64,000 bases of DNA from Hamiltosporidium tvaerminnensis FI-OER-3-3 (Eukaryota > Fungi > Microsporidia), in contig CM061255.1 of NCBI GenBank assembly GCA_022605425.2, positions 1-64,000 on the forward strand. The letters are read 5' to 3'. This document shows, in pieces, positions 3,983 to 40,822 of the stretch. Position 1 is the first letter of the stretch, and the number at the start of each line of letters is the position of its first letter. The notes beneath the pieces were generated by a model. It saw only the letters and a program-made list of their open reading frames with translations, was not told where the DNA came from and did not search any database. Both the position numbers and the translations under genes were made by a program.

Positions 3983-4430
3983 ATGACCTGGGACGGTATT
4001 GTGACAAAATACCATAAGACGTATGTTAAGAGACTGCAAATACCCATGAATGTAGAGGCATATATACAATCCATAGTTCTCAAGAAGACAGTCGAAACAA
4101 TTTCTTTTGATCGACGAAGAGGACTTGAGTCTGGTCCAAATGCCGAGGAGAGCTGGGAGAGAGCATCATTAAGTGTTATTTTAGGAGCTGAGGTGCATAA
4201 ACAACCAATACCCCCTTTAAAGCAAGTAGACAACGAGGAAGATGATGTTAAAACGGAAAATACAAAAAATATTTTACCCCTTATTTGGATGGTATAACCA
4301 CAGCAAAGGAACCATCAACTAATACAAATGAAGAGTTTGAGTTCGAGGAAGAAATAGAAGTGGTTAAAATGGTGGAAAGAATTATTTAGAAAAGAGAAAA
4401 ATTTGTTAACCCAGAATTTTATTAAATAAA
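3983..4430 (+). mobile_element. 5'-truncated 3' end of an R4/Dong-like (RLE-type) non-LTR retrotransposon
   Basis: ORF MTWDGIVTKYHK..IPMNVEAYIQSIVLKKTVETISFDRRRG is the post-endonuclease C-terminus typical of these elements. It is collinear with the relics at 8460-9870 and 63102-63470. An acidic tail continues in another frame to TAG 4387-4389. Confidence 0.8.
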
Positions 4431-27075: not shown

Positions 27076-29087
27076 TGATAAATTTCTGGGAGTTATCAAA
27101 TTTAAATCTATAAAAAAAATTCATTATTCCAAAATTTGTTTATTCTTTTCTTCTAAAATCGAATATTTCGGTGCAAATTGATATTTTTTTTATATTTCGG
27201 ATTACTTTTTATTCTAATCTTCATGGATGAAATTCATATTCGATTATTTTATATTCTGTAAACATGTTTTTTTACGCTTTTTTTCTAAGAAAAATAAAAA
27301 TTATTTAAAAGCCACATTCTATAGAATAGATTCATGTTTCTTTTGTATTCAATACTATTCAAGACTCAATTTTCTTTTGTATTCGAAAAAATCGTTTATT
27401 TTTTCTTTAATGTTTACATTGCTAGGTCAAATTTACTAAATCTATAATGTCTAAATATCTATACTCGTTGGATTTTCATTCATATAACTTTCGTAATAAA
27501 AAAAACTAGATTTTTATTAACTCTTTTTGGATATTAATGATTTGTTCTCCTTTTTTGAAAATTAAATGTGTTCTAAAAATTTGAAATTCGTTAAAAAAAT
27601 CATTTTAAAAATATTTAAAAAAATACTTGGATTTTAGAAAAGAAATAAATAGCAAATGTTGATTCAGAATTTTTTTTGCATATAAGTTATTTTTTACAAT
27701 TTATTTTCGATTAAATAAGATAAATATATAATAGTTGTATTGCTGTTTATTAACATATAAATTGTGCCTATTATAAATCTTATTTAAATCGGCAGTAATT
27801 ATTTTTTTTTAAATTTAAACATAATGCTAAATATATAATGCGGAAGAAATGAATGGAATTTTTAAGTGTAAGATATTTGTTACGCATTAATCATAAATCT
27901 TATATTTTTAGAATATTCAAATTTTTCAAAAAAATCATAACTTGTGTTATTCTAAGAATCAAGAAAAATATAAAACTTGAAAATAAATTCATATTTTAAC
28001 GTATGTAATCTAATTTTGCCTTGAGTTGAAACGGAATTCCATATAAACAATCGAAATCTTAAAACAATTAATTACAGCTGAAAAATGAAAAATGCATATT
28101 TTATGATGATGTTAAATATACAAAATCCAGATTGTATGTATACATTGATTCTTTGATTAATATTCCGCTCTTTAGGCATATCAACCTTATTTTTTGGTTT
28201 TTTGATGTTTATTTATAACTTTATTTGTCAAATTGCAAACAATCAGATTTTTAATTCTCAAAAATTTAGAAAATCTGAGTTATAGTTATTTTTAGAATTT
28301 AATTTCTTTTAAATCTTATTGCGAATGATTGCCATTAAACAAAAAAGGAAAAATATTGTTATCGCGATGGTTAAAATCTTAAAACACTTATCCAGTTTGC
28401 CAATGAATTTCTAAAAAATGCTTTAAAGCTTTATAATTGCTGTTTGGAAAACGAATTTTCTAACATAATTTTAATAAAAACTCTGTAAATTACCTAAGAC
28501 AATTAACTTTTTTTTGAAAATATCCGGTTAAAGTATTATTTTGCGCAGACATTAGAACATAATTGCTAATATGATATTTATTTCAAACAGATATTTCATC
28601 GACTCGATACCTTATTTTATATTTTGATGTAAAAAAATCTGTTTGAGAAAAATTTTAATTCTATAAAAAGTAAAATTAAAATTATTAGCTAGCAAATATT
28701 ACCTTATCTAACTATTAAATGGATTTTTATAAATTAAACTAAATTTTTAGAAATTATTTCGAAATATTTATTTGATTACTAATATGTTCTGTTATAAACA
28801 CCAATATATTTTAAATGTATTTTTATGGTTTTTGGTTATCAAATTTAAATGAAAGAATGAAACGATTTTAGAATTTATTCTTTTCAATATGATTTATCCT
28901 AAATGTAATCCATGATACGAAATTTAAACCATTATTACTTTATAAAACACAAAAAACATTTAAATAAATATTTATTATCTATAGTAATATAATTGTGAGT
29001 GATAGAGGTGTTTGTTTTTGTTGAGTACGTTTCTTTTAAAAATTTTACTTCTTTTGAAGAAGTAGCAAGTTTATTATTGTTATAATT

Positions 29088-29302
29088 ACATTAACCCTGT
29101 TCTAGGTTATGCATAAATAGCTGCACCCCAAACACTTCATCGGTACCCTATGCGATACCTACATCTCGAAGTATTTCCTCTAAAAGAGGTGTAGGACTTA
29201 ATTAATGGCGATACTGTTGCCCATATTTCGTTAATGTCCGTTGCATGGGGTGTGATCATATGTAGAACTCCACCCTGGCATCCTCCAAGACTATGCAGCA
29301 TT
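29088..29302 (+). ncRNA. Unknown structured non-coding element, copy A
   Basis: GC-enriched island homologous along its length to the reverse complement of 38858-39073. Stems are conserved with compensatory changes and there is no ORF. Confidence 0.65.
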
Positions 29303-29713
29303 CCCACTTACTCTACACATTCCGAATCGAAGTAACTTATGGAAAATATATATATCTCGGTTAGTTACATAGGGTGTACTTAGACACTGAAATGTCATAC
29401 CATCAGGTATAATCTGCTGTGTAGCTTTCCTAGCTTTAAAAAACTTTGTTTTTATAATTACCAACCGCTAAGTCTTCGTACCTGAGTCAGCAAAGCTAGG
29501 TTTCCACGCTTTTACATGTAGTTACCTACAAGTTGCGCGATCCTCGATCTAGTTAGATAAAAACACCACAAAATAGATTTGTAGAAAAATTTTGGTTAAT
29601 CTGTAGACCTTCTCCTCCCCATGCAAATCAAATTGAACAGCCTAAAAAGTAGTGTTGTTTTATTCCTATCAAAAATTTAAAAAATGTATTTCATATAGTA
29701 ATTCATATACTCA

Positions 29714-29954
29714 TTCCCCACCATACCGGGAGCAAAATTTGCTTGGGGTATTCTCTGCTTGTAGTAAGAGGCGACTAAAAGGGACTGGTCTCCCATGTTG
29801 GGGCTGGGCGTAGAGCTAACAACCCACCGTTTAAAACCAACTTGTTAAGAAACTCGAAAAAGTAAAAAAATCTACTGGAAAAAGACTGGTGGGCGGTATT
29901 ACTGTGGGAGGCTAAGGCTCATGCAGGGCTGTAATGCCGAGAATGAATGAATGG
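29714..29954 (+). mobile_element. Short non-autonomous RTE-clade retroelement (5' UTR fused to 3' tail) with a 13-bp target-site duplication
   Basis: TSD attcatatactca (29701-29713) / attcacatactca (29955-29967). RTE-like 5' motifs GTAAGAGGCGACTAA and GGGCTGGGCGTAGAGCTAACAACCC. RTE-like 3' end GAGGCTAAGGC..GGGCTGTAATGCC followed by a (GAAT)3 tail. Confidence 0.82.
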
Positions 29955-30440
29955 ATTCACATACTCAAAAACAAGCAGATAGTCTTTTAGGTGGTTATTA
30001 TCCGACCACCTATAATATACTTATACTTTTAATTAAAATTAATAAACTTTTTTAGATTCTTTTAAAAAACATAGAGTTTATTAATCTATGCTCATAAGGT
30101 TTTATAATTCTATTAATAAATTTATTTCAATAGATACAAATTGATATTATCATTATTAACATAAATTTGTTCATTATTTTTGAAAATATCTAATAATTGC
30201 GGTTTTAAAACATAATTACATTCTAAAATGAGTTTTTTAATTTCCATATGATTCATTTACTATAAATAATTAAATTAAATGTAAATTTGCAATTCGAATT
30301 GTTTATAATTTTATAAAATACTCAATTAGATGTAAATAAACGTTATTTGGTTTGTCCTCATAAAAAAAAACAAATTATATTCTCATTTATATTTGATTGG
30401 ATATAAATATTATAAATTTCCCAAAAAAGGAAAAAAATAA

Positions 30441-31208
30441 ATGTTATTTTTGCTTATTTTAGAAGATACAAAATGTTCATATTTAACCGGTTTTTTAGAA
30501 AATATAACTAAAAACTATCAAGGTATAATAAAAAATCTGCAATTTATCCTACTTATTACTATGGCTTTATTTTTAATGTTGATTGGAATTCGATTTATGA
30601 CCATTTCGTTAGCAATATTACTTGTTTTGTTAGGAGTGTGTACATGTTATGATATCTTGAAAAAGGCTGAATTTGCTTATAATAATGGAAAAAATTTTCT
30701 ATTTATGCCACCAAGTACATATAAAGACTATGTCATATATGCACTAGAAAACCCTCATATTGTTCATCTAATAATTATTGTATTATCACTTGTTTTGGCT
30801 TCAATTATTCTTGCTGTTTTCAGAGGAATATTTGCTCTTTTGTATGGTATTTTACTTATATTTATATACAAAGAGGGTTTTCATATAACAGCTTTTGCAG
30901 AACTTGGAATTCAAAATGAAGTTTTAAGAGGAATAATTTTTGTAGCAATTGCTGTTTTTGGATTTTTTATAATTGCCGTAAAACTTAATGAAGTACTATT
31001 TGCACTTATATTTAGTTTTATGGGTTCTGTATTGCTTTTAATTACGTTAGAAGCGTTTTTAAAGCAAAAATGGGGATATGAGAGTGCTTTTCATGATTTA
31101 CAAAAGAAAGTTTTGCCCGAAATTCGTTCTGATTCACTTCTTATTTTGAGTATTATGATTGCCGTATCTTTTGGTATACAATTAAGTTCTATTATATTCT
31201 CTTTATAG
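30441..31208 (+). CDS. Multi-pass membrane protein, possibly DUF4203/TMEM198-like
   Basis: Intact 255-aa ORF with about 7 hydrophobic segments. The LIG.R and S..GS patterns recall DUF4203; family assignment is tentative. Confidence 0.75.
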   Translation: MLFLLILEDTKCSYLTGFLENITKNYQGIIKNLQFILLITMALFLMLIGIRFMTISLAILLVLLGVCTCYDILKKAEFAYNNGKNFLFMPPSTYKDYVIYALENPHIVHLIIIVLSLVLASIILAVFRGIFALLYGILLIFIYKEGFHITAFAELGIQNEVLRGIIFVAIAVFGFFIIAVKLNEVLFALIFSFMGSVLLLITLEAFLKQKWGYESAFHDLQKKVLPEIRSDSLLILSIMIAVSFGIQLSSIIFSL

Positions 31209-36062: not shown

Positions 36063-37971
36063 TTTAAATATTTCATAGTTAAATATTTCGAAACAAAATT
36101 GACAGTAAAATAAGTTTTAAATATATTTTCTTCAGTTGTTTTCTTTTATCATTCTGTTCGTCAATAAGTGCCAAAGTTTTTATGATTGTAAATAAATTTT
36201 ATTTTATGAAATCTCTTGAACATTTTATTGTCATAATTATATTTTTTTGATTTACATTATACTTTAATAATTTCAGAAAAGACTTTTTGGATTTAAAGTG
36301 TCTTCTAGTAATTCAAATCTTGATGCTTTATATTATTTAAAAAGAATTTGTTTGATCAATTTTTTAGATTACTTTACAAAGTGATTACTTTTTAATTATA
36401 TTATTATCTCAATTAGATAGAAAGCATCTATTCTTTAAGTATTAAAACGATGCGAATAGAGTGATAAATCAATTCAAAAGTTCTAAAAGGAATCTTATAT
36501 GCAGTCAGTATTTATACACAATATATTCTTCTCTAGTTTATCAGAATACTTAAAGGATAAGTATCTATAAAAAACGCATTTCCTAATATCTTCTAATTTA
36601 TATTGTATTAGAAAGAGATATAAAAAAATAAATCACATTTATTCTTTATATATCAATTTGAGTTGAGTAATTTGATTTTTTACTATAAAGCAGACGAAAA
36701 ATATACATTTAAAAATTGAGGAAAATACCAATAGCTTTATAGTGTTTGAATGGTTTAAATAAATAACAATTTTTAAAATATACTTTGAAATAAGCATGCC
36801 AGACATCTTAATAAAATCTATAAATAAACCTCATTTTTGCTACTTAAATATATTTTCTACATCTAGAGTTAATTTTAACTGAATGGATTCTTAGATATTA
36901 GCCATTATATTTGTTATAATTTATATAAACTCATTTTAAGGATAAAAGATAAGTAAAATTATGGTAAAAATCTAATTTAAGCCTTGGAATTAAATATTAA
37001 GTTGGTTTTTAAAACATTCTTAAGCAAAAAATATGTGAATGATTGTTTTTATATTATATAGGAATGTTAGAATCTTTAAAATAATTATTATATTTATTTT
37101 TAAAAATAATGTATATAAGAACAACGACACCTATAAAAAGGGTAAAAATGATACAATCTAGACAATTAAATAAGATCAGCCAAATAAACAAACACAACTT
37201 TTTGTAAACCGACCCGTTATATATAGCCACCATATCTGCATTCGGTCTTTTGTTCTAAAAACAACACCAATATATTCAGATAAATATATTAAAGGAGTAA
37301 ATTTACTAACCATTTGTGTTATATACATTGTTCTGAAGAGAAGTTAACCAAATTAAAATCTATCAATTTAATACGAATGTGTGAAGTTGATTTTAATTTT
37401 ATTTTAGGAATTTTTGGTGGAAAAAAATCAACACAAAATTTTCACTTGTTCCAAGGAGATTTAAGTAAGGAGGAGAAACGGTTTACACAATTTGAAAATT
37501 CTTTTAAGAACTTATTTTGTAATTTTTTATTTAATCAGATTATAAAATAGTAGTTTTCTTTGTAAGTAATAGACACGTAAAACTATATAAACCTAGCCTT
37601 TCTCTCTCGAATTACAATAGATTTCACCTGAGAAATACAAAAAAAAACATTCTCTTTCAAAAATTAAAGAAACTTAAGTAGCAGATTATACCTATTGGTA
37701 TGACATTGTAACATATATGTTAATCAATATAAGTCACTGAGATATTTCATATCCGAATGTCTATTTAATTTGAATTGTGTAGTATAAGCAGAGAACTACT
37801 TCTACTCTTATACAAGACTGTTTCAGCCCCGGCATCACAGCCCATAATACCTATTCGAAGGAAAATTTCATTAGTTACTGGATTTTAATCCATTTCATAC
37901 ATTCTTTTACCTAAAAGCTTTTATTCACAAGTACTTAAAAACTACTTATGATGTATTAGAATAAGATCATC

Positions 37972-38002
37972 TATGTTAAACCTAGAACTGCGTTAATGTC
38001 AT
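37972..38002 (-). repeat. 31-nt exact fragment of the end of structured element copy B
   Basis: tatgttaaacctagaactgcgttaatgtcat is identical to 39043-39073. Confidence 0.9.
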
Positions 38003-38106
38003 AAAAAATATATTTAAGAGCTACTTATTTTAAAAAACATGGGTTATTTAGTAAATAAAATTATAAATCTAATATTCAATAATTCCTTAAATCAATAACA
38101 CAAGCT

Positions 38107-38212
38107 TAATAACTAATAGAACTTCAAAGTCAATTTTAAACCTAATAACTATTAGAACATCAAAGTAATTTTGAACCTAATAACTATTAGAAGTTCAAAG
38201 TAAGTTTTAAAC
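38107..38212. repeat. Tandem repeat, ~35-bp unit x3
   Basis: Consensus taataactattagaacttcaaagtaattttaaacc occurs three times with few mismatches. Confidence 0.85.
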
Positions 38213-38609
38213 ATATGATTCTAACAGTAAAGTAAACAATAAATTACACAATATATCCAATAATATTTCTTATATGCACAATAACCCTTAATTATAAATC
38301 TCTTAATTTAAAATAATTTCTATACTTCTCTAACCCTATATATACTTAACCCTATCCTTAAATAGATTTGTTTACCTTTTTTTCATCAAATTACGTTTAA
38401 TATATTCAATCTCTTATTTAAATTATTAATTTATATTTTCAAATATTTTATCAATAAAGAAACATAATTCTATATTAAATATAAAGGATTAAATATTAAA
38501 TTATACTTCAAGGTTACTCAGTAATATTAATTCTTTATATTTTCATTTATTTTATTTCTCTCTAATTTCATTTTTCTATGTTTTTATTCTTATTTATAAT
38601 TTTGGTAGT

Positions 38610-38860
38610 ACCATATAAATTTTTTTCTAATTATTTCTATTTTTCATAAAATACATTAATTTCCCAAATAATTTTCTAATTTCCATAAAACCATTTGTAA
38701 TTTATAATTTCTCAAATATTTCTTATCAAACCTTTTTTCTAATTTCCCAAATAATTTCTAATTTTCATTGAAGCCTTTCTTCAAAAACTTTTCTATTTTT
38801 CCTAAATAATTTATAATTTCTCAAATATTTTCATATAAACCTTTTTTCTAATTTTCTAAT
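38610..38860. repeat. Degenerate AT-rich minisatellite
   Basis: Recurrent ttttctaatttcccaaataatt and ttataatttctcaaatattt modules. Confidence 0.6.
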
Positions 38861-39073
38861 GCTGCATAGTCTTGAGGGAGCCCGAGGGGCTTCGGCCTTC
38901 GATCAAACTCCATGCAACGAACATTAACGAACTCCGGGCAACTGCCTCGCCTATTAATTAGGTTCTACATACCTGGTAAATGAAAGGCTCTTGGAGTAGG
39001 TATCACAGGAAGTACTGATTGTGTGTTGGGGTAGCGGTCATTTATGTTAAACCTAGAACTGCGTTAATGTCAT
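38858..39073 (-). ncRNA. Unknown structured non-coding element, copy B
   Basis: Sharp GC-rich island in AT-rich repeats. Its reverse complement aligns with 29088-29302 in eight conserved blocks. G-U versus A-C asymmetry favours the minus strand. Confidence 0.65.
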
Positions 39074-40822
39074 GAAAACAAAAATAACTTTTGCCACTGT
39101 TTTAAAAATATGTGATAATTTAAATAAAGTATTTTGATTTTAGTAAATTTTAAAATTTTTTTTCAAAACAGTATGAATATTTTGTACATTTTAAATGTTA
39201 AAATTTAATTTTTCTACTTCTGACAAAACTCACATGGATCAAAATTTATTTTATCAGTAAGCTATACTAATTTAAAGTTTATATTTCTTAGCCATTTTTA
39301 TATTCATATGAGAATTCTCAAAAAATTATGTATATATGACAAGAAATTTTACATAAATATTAAAAAAAAACATTCTAATTTTATAAACAATTAATCAAAA
39401 AGTGATTGTTAAACATAAAAGTAAAATTTATACCGCATTAAATATAGAATAGTTCTTTTTTTTCCTTCAATTTCTCTATTTTATTTTAATTCTATTTTTT
39501 TTGTCAAAGCGAAAAAATATTGATTATAAATTGTCTTTATTATACAAATAAAAGAGGTACTGTACGCAAAATCTTTTCCGAAAGAATTTGTTTACAAAAT
39601 TTTTACTGTTAATAATTTTTAAATTTCGACTTTTTTTTCGGTTCATTGAAACGAAAGATAAATTCTTTAAGACATTCATTTCTTAAAAAAAAAATTTAAG
39701 TTACATTTCATAAGAAAATAAGTTTAATTTATGGAGATTTTATAAATTACTATTTGCTGTTAAAAATTAAAGAAATCAAAATAAATTTTCAAACCGACTG
39801 TAGGAGACAGTTTAAAGATAAAATTAATTTTTAAAGAGTTGGTTTCTATTAAAATTAATTTAGTGACTTAAATTTCAATAGCTTTCATAAATTTATTTTC
39901 TTTAATAATTATAAGAATATTAAAAAAATGTCTGAAAGTCGGATTTAGAAGAAGAAAAGATGGTGGAAAAAGATGCGAAAGAGAATCAATAAAAGTGCAA
40001 AGTGGTTTAACCAAGAAATTCACCAAATAATATCCTTTAAAAAAAGTCTCAACAGTAAATATATTGCTGATTTAAATTTTTTGTTTTAATTTTTCATTAT
40101 GAATACGATTTTGTGTTAAAAGCAAGAATAAAAAGATAAATAATGTACTGATAAATTAAAATATTTGTTAATTTAAATTTCTAAAAAAATTATTGTGCTT
40201 TTTGTTATTTTTATGACGGAACTATTTTTTTAATGATGACTTTTGAAGAAATTTAAATGATCTTTAATGACTTAAATATTCTATTTATTATGAATCTTGA
40301 ATTTATCATGTTTTAAAAACTAAATTTATTCGTTATAATAGGTTTACTTTACGTTTTAATGTGAATTTTAGCCTTCTTTTGCTTTTTGCATCTGTATTTA
40401 ATATTCAACGCTTCACTTTTTATTCTGTTTTAACTCGTGATTCTATTCATTTGATCTAAACTTAGGAACAGTTCGATGTCTTAATATCTATTAATCGTAA
40501 ATTTCTATATGTTTCTGGAAAAATGTAATAAATTTCGAGTAACTGATACAAATCAGCTTTTTCATATAACTCCTTTAGAAAAATATAAAAATAATTTTTT
40601 TTTCATTCGCGTAAATTAAATCATAAATCAAATACAGCAATAAATGATATAATTTATTGCTCAAACGTATTAAATCAATTTACTATTTTATATAACCAAT
40701 AGAAAAAATGATTAATTACAAAAAGAAATCAAATTTCTATTTTTGACAAATAAATATTTAGAAAAAAAATTGTCCCATTTTGGTAAATTATTGAATATAT
40801 AATTCGAAAAAAATTTGATCCC

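Follow-up and report, generated by a model that had tools for sequence, protein, structure and literature searches.

A stem-forming 215-nt stretch near a chromosome end of Hamiltosporidium tvaerminnensis is very probably the 5′ part of a dispersed SINE-like retroposon

Introduction

Near one chromosome end of the microsporidian Hamiltosporidium tvaerminnensis, two stretches of about 215 nt (copies A and B) lie on opposite strands and can be drawn with the same set of helices, which raises the question of whether they represent a novel family of structured RNAs or owe their likeness to something else. The first of these answers had been given by a reading of the 64,000-nt stretch of DNA that carries both copies (hereafter the window), made from the letters alone; this sequence-only reading had also named a ribozyme, a retroelement-terminal RNA and a mobile non-coding RNA as fallbacks.

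Genome expansion by mobile elements is the main question asked of H. tvaerminnensis. Its published assembly comprises 17 contigs and 21.64 Mb, with TTAGGG telomeres, and contains 39.56% interspersed repeats, of which 25.45% are unclassified 'other' (PMC10542269). Short interspersed elements (SINEs) are not mentioned in two surveys of microsporidian mobile elements (PMC7313128 and PMC4202319), and our literature search on microsporidian SINEs and other non-autonomous elements found no description of a family such as the one reported here.

Results

A 729-nt element present in hundreds of copies

The two copies indeed align from end to end, with ~80% identity between positions 29088-29302 of the window (copy A, forward strand) and 39073-38858 (copy B, reverse strand). 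The limits of the 215-nt stretch did not hold, however: similarity starts ~58 nt further upstream in both copies and, in copy A as well as in hundreds of other copies, runs on to 729 nt. The original 3′ limit is an artefact, because copy B is truncated at that point. Nor are there only two copies, as had been thought, since the genome carries ~790. When all 21,638,905 bases of the 17 contigs were searched with copy A and its short flanks, 783 first-look candidates were returned, and all 40 of the matches that were scored had E < 1e-55. A 26-nt head motif (up to 3 mismatches allowed) matched the genome 791 times and a reversed control not once, while a 14-nt tail motif (up to 1 mismatch) gave 256 matches, against 4 in the control.

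Column conservation in an alignment of 27 loci of the main family falls sharply at both edges of the element. Its 5′ end, (A/C)TTTATTTAAAAGTATCACATC..., that is, (A/C)TTTATTT..., is situated ~58-65 nt upstream of the start of the 215-nt stretch, and its 3′ end, ...GGTTATCCTCCCTCCACC, ~450 nt downstream of the end of that stretch, which thus occupies element positions ~59-275. None of the 27 main-family loci is truncated, and their identity to one reference copy is 94-100%. Eight further heads without a match to the tail motif proved to be full length too (8/8, ~729 nt, 88-96% alike), so that these apparent heads without tails have tails that differ from the motif at more than one position. In total, 35 of the 35 main-family copies inspected are full length and 88-100% alike, and every full-length copy keeps the AT-rich leader of 58-65 nt upstream of the head. 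The element has no open reading frame, with stop codons throughout all six frames, and it lacks a poly(A) or simple-repeat tail; runs of five to six T residues are found inside it at positions ~22, ~421 and ~700. Most copies are young. With ~790 copies of 729 nt, the family is estimated to make up ~0.5-0.58 Mb, or 2-3% of the genome.

The part that is best conserved across copies A, B, C and D (copies C and D being diverged members described below) is AATGTCATACCAAYAGGTATAAYCTGCT, a small ATACC/GGTAT hairpin at element positions ~360-400, found at window positions 29385-29420 in copy A and 37715-37680 in copy C; its conservation exceeds that of most of the head.

Insertion signature

Direct repeats of 11-24 bp, as expected of target-site duplications, flank about 20 of the 27 main-family copies. 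For comparison, the longest repeat in mismatched pairs of flanks averaged 6.8, with a 95th percentile of 9. Insertion is exact at the 3′ junction, the downstream repeat beginning 0-1 nt past ...CCACC, whereas the 5′ junction is ragged, with 0-12 extra bases between the upstream repeat and the start of the element. Target-primed reverse transcription by the enzyme of a long interspersed element (LINE) characteristically leaves duplications of variable length together with a 3′ junction that is exact and a 5′ junction that is ragged, and this combination therefore points to LINE-driven retroposition. The polarity of the junctions also identifies the RNA strand, which is the one on which the 215-nt stretch was read; the strand call made earlier from G-U pairs thus agrees with the duplications. 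Altogether, the 729-nt unit is very probably a non-autonomous, SINE-like non-LTR retroposon without an open reading frame, and the 215-nt stretch is its 5′ third.

Three dead copies in the window

The window begins with telomere repeats, (CCCTAA)n, about 65 of them at positions 1-390, and therefore represents a chromosome end, with copy A ~29 kb away from it. The copies in the window are listed in Table 1 along with other features discussed here.

Table 1. Coordinates of the retroposon copies and associated features
Feature	Position	Strand	Description
Copy A	window 29030..30010	+	complete, old, diverged retroposon copy, 76% identical to the main family
GC-rich head of copy A (the 215-nt stretch)	window 29088..29302	+	element ~59-275
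Nested small retroelement	window 29714..29954	+	another family, ~241 bp; from sequence reading and the BLAST gap in copy A
Copy C	window 37361..38060	-	near full length, strongly decayed toward A/T; 3′ limit approximate
Copy B	window 38858..39130	-	leader and head (first ~275 nt) of a main-family copy; ~90% identity to the family
Triplicated segment (L001-L003)	window 27560-30810; G000:C10:689609-692859; G000:C17:894685-897933		surroundings of copy A
Tail-sharing L091	G000:C1:516300-517230		unrelated to L092 and L093
Tail-sharing L092	G000:C1:1133300-1134250		unrelated to L091 and L093
Tail-sharing L093	G000:C1:151200-152150		unrelated to L091 and L092

In a BLAST comparison with a main-family copy (the element at L019), copy A matched in two pieces, 29040-29718 (element 11-690) and 29956-30014 (element 674-732). 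The gap between them is filled by a small retroelement that ends in GAATGAATGAATGG, with (GAAT/AATG) repeats, and is flanked by its own 13-bp target-site duplication, ATTCAYATACTCA, at 29701-29713 and 29955-29967; it was inserted later than copy A. Around copy A itself no target-site duplication is recognisable. Its neighbourhood, at least 3.25 kb including the nested element, occurs three times in the genome with 96-97.5% identity. This triplicated segment is a segmental duplication, possibly a subtelomeric one, so that 'type A' represents one old insertion that was carried along by the duplication.

Copy B corresponds to element positions 2-275 (BLAST match at 39128-38858). Nothing of the element is left beyond position ~275, where an AT-rich minisatellite, with tandem repeats at 38698-38854, has taken the place of the 3′ side. 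Copy B is adjoined by copy C, which was matched in two pieces (38059-37969 and 37751-37410) and has a GC content of 26%, compared with 42% in the young ones. In copy C the majority of the proposed stems no longer hold: 19 of 35 proposed pairs can still be formed, which is no better than when its changes are placed at random. Compared with the young family, substitutions are biased from GC to AT by 2:1 in copy A and in copy D, another diverged member from elsewhere in the genome, and by 3:1 in copy C, the GC content going from 42% in the young family to 36%, 38% and 26% in copies A, D and C, respectively. Such a bias is expected for decaying copies. None of copies A, B and C is a gene; they are dead insertions, each of a different age.

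The 800 nt between copies B and C are occupied by AT-rich minisatellites at 38107-38212, 38527-38587 and 38698-38854, with periods of 35, 25 and 55, respectively. Elsewhere in the window, 4 kb from the telomere, positions 3989-4286 on the forward strand match the 3′ coding end of an abundant LINE (the L047 type) at 99%.

Base-pairing in the 5′ head

The helices on which the proposal of a structured RNA had been built are indeed present. All 36 proposed pairs can form in copy A, the six helices as listed pair in 99.3% of cells across 23 distinct family members, and most of them emerge when copy B alone is folded with RNAfold. What found no support is their conservation beyond that of the sequence: 27 of the 36 pairs are invariant, and the RNAalifold covariation term amounts to only -0.36 kcal/mol. 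A single pair (1/36) changes on both sides, and it does so in the decayed copy B. This is the change of ATCG/CGAT to ATCA/TGAT that had been taken for compensatory. It is private to copy B, while the majority of the family has ATCG/CGAT, as copy A does, and both of its changes are transitions at CpG sites, in a copy that has diverged from the family sequence by ~10% through decay. Because selection cannot act on a dead copy, this double change is not evidence of selection. In the larger alignment covariation was not significant, an outcome that the sequence-only reading had itself listed as a refutation, the score being 0.020 versus 0.018 for shuffled data, in an alignment that amounts to ~3 independent lineages and has low power.

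A fold of the ~220-nt head may nevertheless have been under selection, with six helices closed by ACAUUAAC/GUUAAUGU and followed by the GUUGCAUGG/CUAUGCAGC stem, and it might have served the master copies as promoter architecture, in RNA stability or in the formation of a ribonucleoprotein (RNP); it would refine the retroposon explanation, not replace it. Two results argue for it. When the alignment columns were shuffled 300 times, the consensus fold of lineages A and B was better than that of 297 of the shuffles (z = -2.4, compared with -1.3 on the opposite strand). The other comes from copy D (L017:3252-2580), an independent, diverged, full-length copy that is 79.5% identical in the head and was not used in deriving the structure: the duplex stability of its six helices is -35.9 kcal/mol, versus -20.0 ± 6.0 kcal/mol when its own substitutions are placed at random (P = 0.004), and in its closing stem, read by eye, 7 of 8 pairs are formable despite 5-6 changes. 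On the other hand, the number of pairs retained by copy D under a strict column alignment is 28 of 36, with 26.4 in the null (P = 0.32). Single-sequence folding gave copy A a z-score of -1.55 and copy B one of -1.92; the opposite strand of A gave -1.43. When the minimum-energy helices of the young family alone were taken instead, copies A and D paired no better than chance, in the head as well as in the body (P = 0.11-0.99). Between copy A and the main family, several stretches of the body are about as similar as the head is, and conserved blocks of sequence, for example protein or promoter sites, would yield an equal retention of pairs. The evidence for a fold of the 5′ head is thus weak, and we consider a selected fold possible but unproven, and on balance doubtful.

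A shared tail and the search for a partner LINE

Several sequences that are otherwise unrelated (L091-L093, L048, L018 and L021) end on the 3′ side in a match of 77-79% identity to the last 105-150 nt of the element. In particular, the 'tails without heads' on contig 1 are other elements that have only their last ~110-150 nt in common with the family. The mutually unrelated L091, L092 and L093 are probably further non-autonomous families that use the same reverse transcriptase. A 187-aa open frame upstream of the L091 tail had no match among the LINE loci that were compared.

The genome contains 466 reverse-transcriptase candidates, which include RTE-like LINEs with endonuclease and reverse-transcriptase domains, LINEs with open reading frames of ~1,250-1,290 aa, and gypsy elements. 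None of 30 reverse-transcriptase loci carries the tail of the element in the right orientation (0/30); it is absent from the 3′ ends of the RTE-like LINEs and from the three most abundant LINE families, all of which end in ...AACCCAGAATTTTATTAAATAA. The 5′ head was compared with the 5′ end of one LINE, which begins at its ATG and has no leader in common with the element. Among the LINE families sampled, no autonomous partner was found.

The abundant LINEs of the L058, L047 and L052 types have a terminus of their own in common, ...TTAACCCAGAATTTTATTAAATAA, as seen in the 3′ ends at L065-L082, and each of these 3′ ends returned more than 900 first-look candidates. This suggests a common 3′ recognition module in the three families.

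On contigs 5 and 12, the tail motif is situated 1.7-1.9 kb upstream of reverse-transcriptase domains. The motif on contig 5 was considered as a LINE leader and rejected, as it belongs to a neighbouring full element, with 170 nt of unrelated spacer before the LINE. The composite of a full retroposon, the 170-nt spacer and an L058-type LINE is repeated several times within G000:C5:630000-687000 (L063 and L064), where tail motifs are located at 632169, 654868, 661600, 680051 and 686788 and a spacing of 6.7 kb occurs twice.

Discussion

Alternative identities of the element

A stand-alone family of structured non-coding RNA genes of ~215 nt, with copies A and B as paralogous genes, would account for a stretch that is richer in GC than its surroundings, allows stems to be drawn in both copies and matches no known family. 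This last point of the sequence-only reading was borne out: Rfam, whose families include the HDV-like, hammerhead and twister ribozymes, snRNA, SRP and RNase P/MRP, gave no match at the gathering score anywhere in the 64-kb window, and with E-values up to 10 copies A and B and the whole young element found only chance-level matches to unrelated families, the best at 12-16 bits against thresholds of 37-94, while ARAGORN detected no tRNA-like sequence in the window. Yet homology continues beyond the supposed gene, by 58 nt on the upstream side and, in copy A and in 35 of 35 full-length copies, by 450 nt on the downstream side; the target-site duplications bound the 729-nt unit rather than the 215 nt; and copy B has accumulated ~10% private changes, while copy C has lost the stems. 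Genes of this kind are accordingly highly improbable, and the novel 215-nt RNA family gives way to the 5′ part of a 729-nt dispersed retroposon, a result for which the fallbacks of a retroelement-terminal RNA and a mobile non-coding RNA were essentially right. The third fallback fares no better than the RNA genes. Since several non-LTR retrotransposons carry an HDV-like ribozyme at the 5′ end, the head, a compact multi-helix domain, might be expected to house a self-cleaving ribozyme of the HDV-like, hammerhead or a similar type that trims the transcript. However, no ribozyme family scores at E up to 10 on either strand of the head or of the whole element, and no conserved catalytic-core motif was recognised. 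Moreover, 5′ cleavage at position ~60 would strip off the leader before reverse transcription, but the AT-rich leader upstream of the fold is kept in every full-length copy, which makes a ribozyme very unlikely.

The dispersed unit as a whole could also be a solo LTR of an LTR retrotransposon, or a MITE or other DNA transposon. A length of 729 nt is typical of LTRs, gypsy-type elements exist in this genome (for example at L041), and a few copies of the element adjoin reverse-transcriptase genes. Its ends, (A/C)TTTATTT... and ...CTCCACC, are nevertheless without the TG...CA of LTRs; there are no terminal inverted repeats, the two ends not being reverse complements of each other; and the duplications vary from 11 to 24 bp, being neither 4-6 bp nor of any fixed length. 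The adjacency to a LINE on contig 5 goes back to a single composite unit that was locally duplicated, and by a rough estimate the number of adjacencies to reverse-transcriptase genes is consistent with chance. By its termini and duplications, both the solo LTR and the MITE were excluded, and we regard such an origin as extremely improbable.

Proposed mode of mobility

For the SINE-like retroposon, the following mechanism is proposed. A few master copies would be transcribed on the strand on which the 215-nt stretch was read, more likely by RNA polymerase II than by RNA polymerase III, as the T5-T6 runs would hinder the latter across 729 nt. The 5′ ~280 nt, made up of the AT-rich leader and the GC-rich head, would carry what master copies need at the 5′ end, possibly a promoter within the element, a fold that makes the RNA more stable or allows its packaging, or both. 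At the other end, a small GUGG...CCAC hairpin terminates the last ~110 nt, a stretch that may be recognised by the reverse transcriptase of some LINE, and this enzyme would then use the RNA of the element as a template for target-primed reverse transcription at nicks in AT-rich DNA. For an element without a poly(A) or simple-repeat tail, recognition of the 3′ end is the likely mode, and it is in line with the recurrence of the last 105-150 nt at the ends of unrelated sequences.

Comparison with known retroposons

SINEs of the stringent type share their 3′ tail with a partner LINE, as do UnaSINE1 and UnaL2 of the eel and a tortoise Pol III SINE and CR1. Like them, the element is short, non-coding and non-autonomous, exists in hundreds of dispersed copies with variable target-site duplications, and does without poly(A), having instead a conserved 3′ module with a small hairpin that is also present on other elements of the same genome. 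Unlike them, it has no detected head derived from tRNA, 5S or 7SL RNA and no A and B boxes, its internal T5-T6 runs argue against RNA polymerase III, it is 729 nt long, and none of the LINE 3′ ends sampled carries the same tail. With Rfam and ARAGORN, no head derived from tRNA, 5S, 7SL or snRNA was detected, so that the head is not detectably descended from a Pol III gene. The 729-nt element is therefore not a textbook SINE, and it is also longer than most SINEs.

Further parallels may be seen in EhSINE1/2 of Entamoeba histolytica, a protist whose genome is AT-rich as well, and RIME/NARTc of trypanosomatids, which are non-coding retroposons of 260-650 nt and the non-autonomous partners of EhLINE, ingi and L1Tc, mobilised in trans by these LINEs. 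The element resembles them in being non-coding and present in hundreds of copies without a classical Pol III-gene head. Whereas they share 5′ and/or 3′ sequence with their LINE, neither the head nor the tail of the element matches any LINE sampled here.

Significance

The family appears to have been neither described nor classified so far, as judged without the repeat library itself, and in the published assembly it is probably masked already, under an unknown family of RepeatModeler. A class can now be assigned to a repeat that ranks among the largest unclassified ones of this large-genome microsporidian, and a false lead is removed, the stretch being neither a new ribozyme nor an RNA gene family. 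The family should be masked whenever real non-coding RNAs are sought in this genome. Recently active, non-coding and dependent on a LINE, with an unusual head and without an obvious partner, the retroposon should be useful for microsporidian transposon biology.

If a six-helix domain was truly selected, it would represent a new kind of retroposon 5′ module, either a promoter or an RNP scaffold. Similarly, the tail might turn out to be a module common to several non-autonomous families, and the LINE that serves it one that is rare in this genome or has died out there. That all of this holds together, making this the first SINE-like family to be characterised in Microsporidia, with a head not taken from a Pol III gene, a selected six-helix 5′ domain and a shared tail served by such a LINE, seems unlikely to us.

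One minor observation concerns the ends of the element and of the LINEs. In one subfamily (5′ junctions L024, L026 and L029), the retroposon starts with AGAATATTTATTTGGAAATA, which is similar to the LINE terminus AGAATTTTATTAAATA, and at L025 the 16-bp duplication of the element is exactly equal to that terminus. The likeness of AGAATATTTATTTGGAAATA and AGAATTTTATTAAATA could be due to chance in AT-rich DNA, or else to template switching or a target preference.
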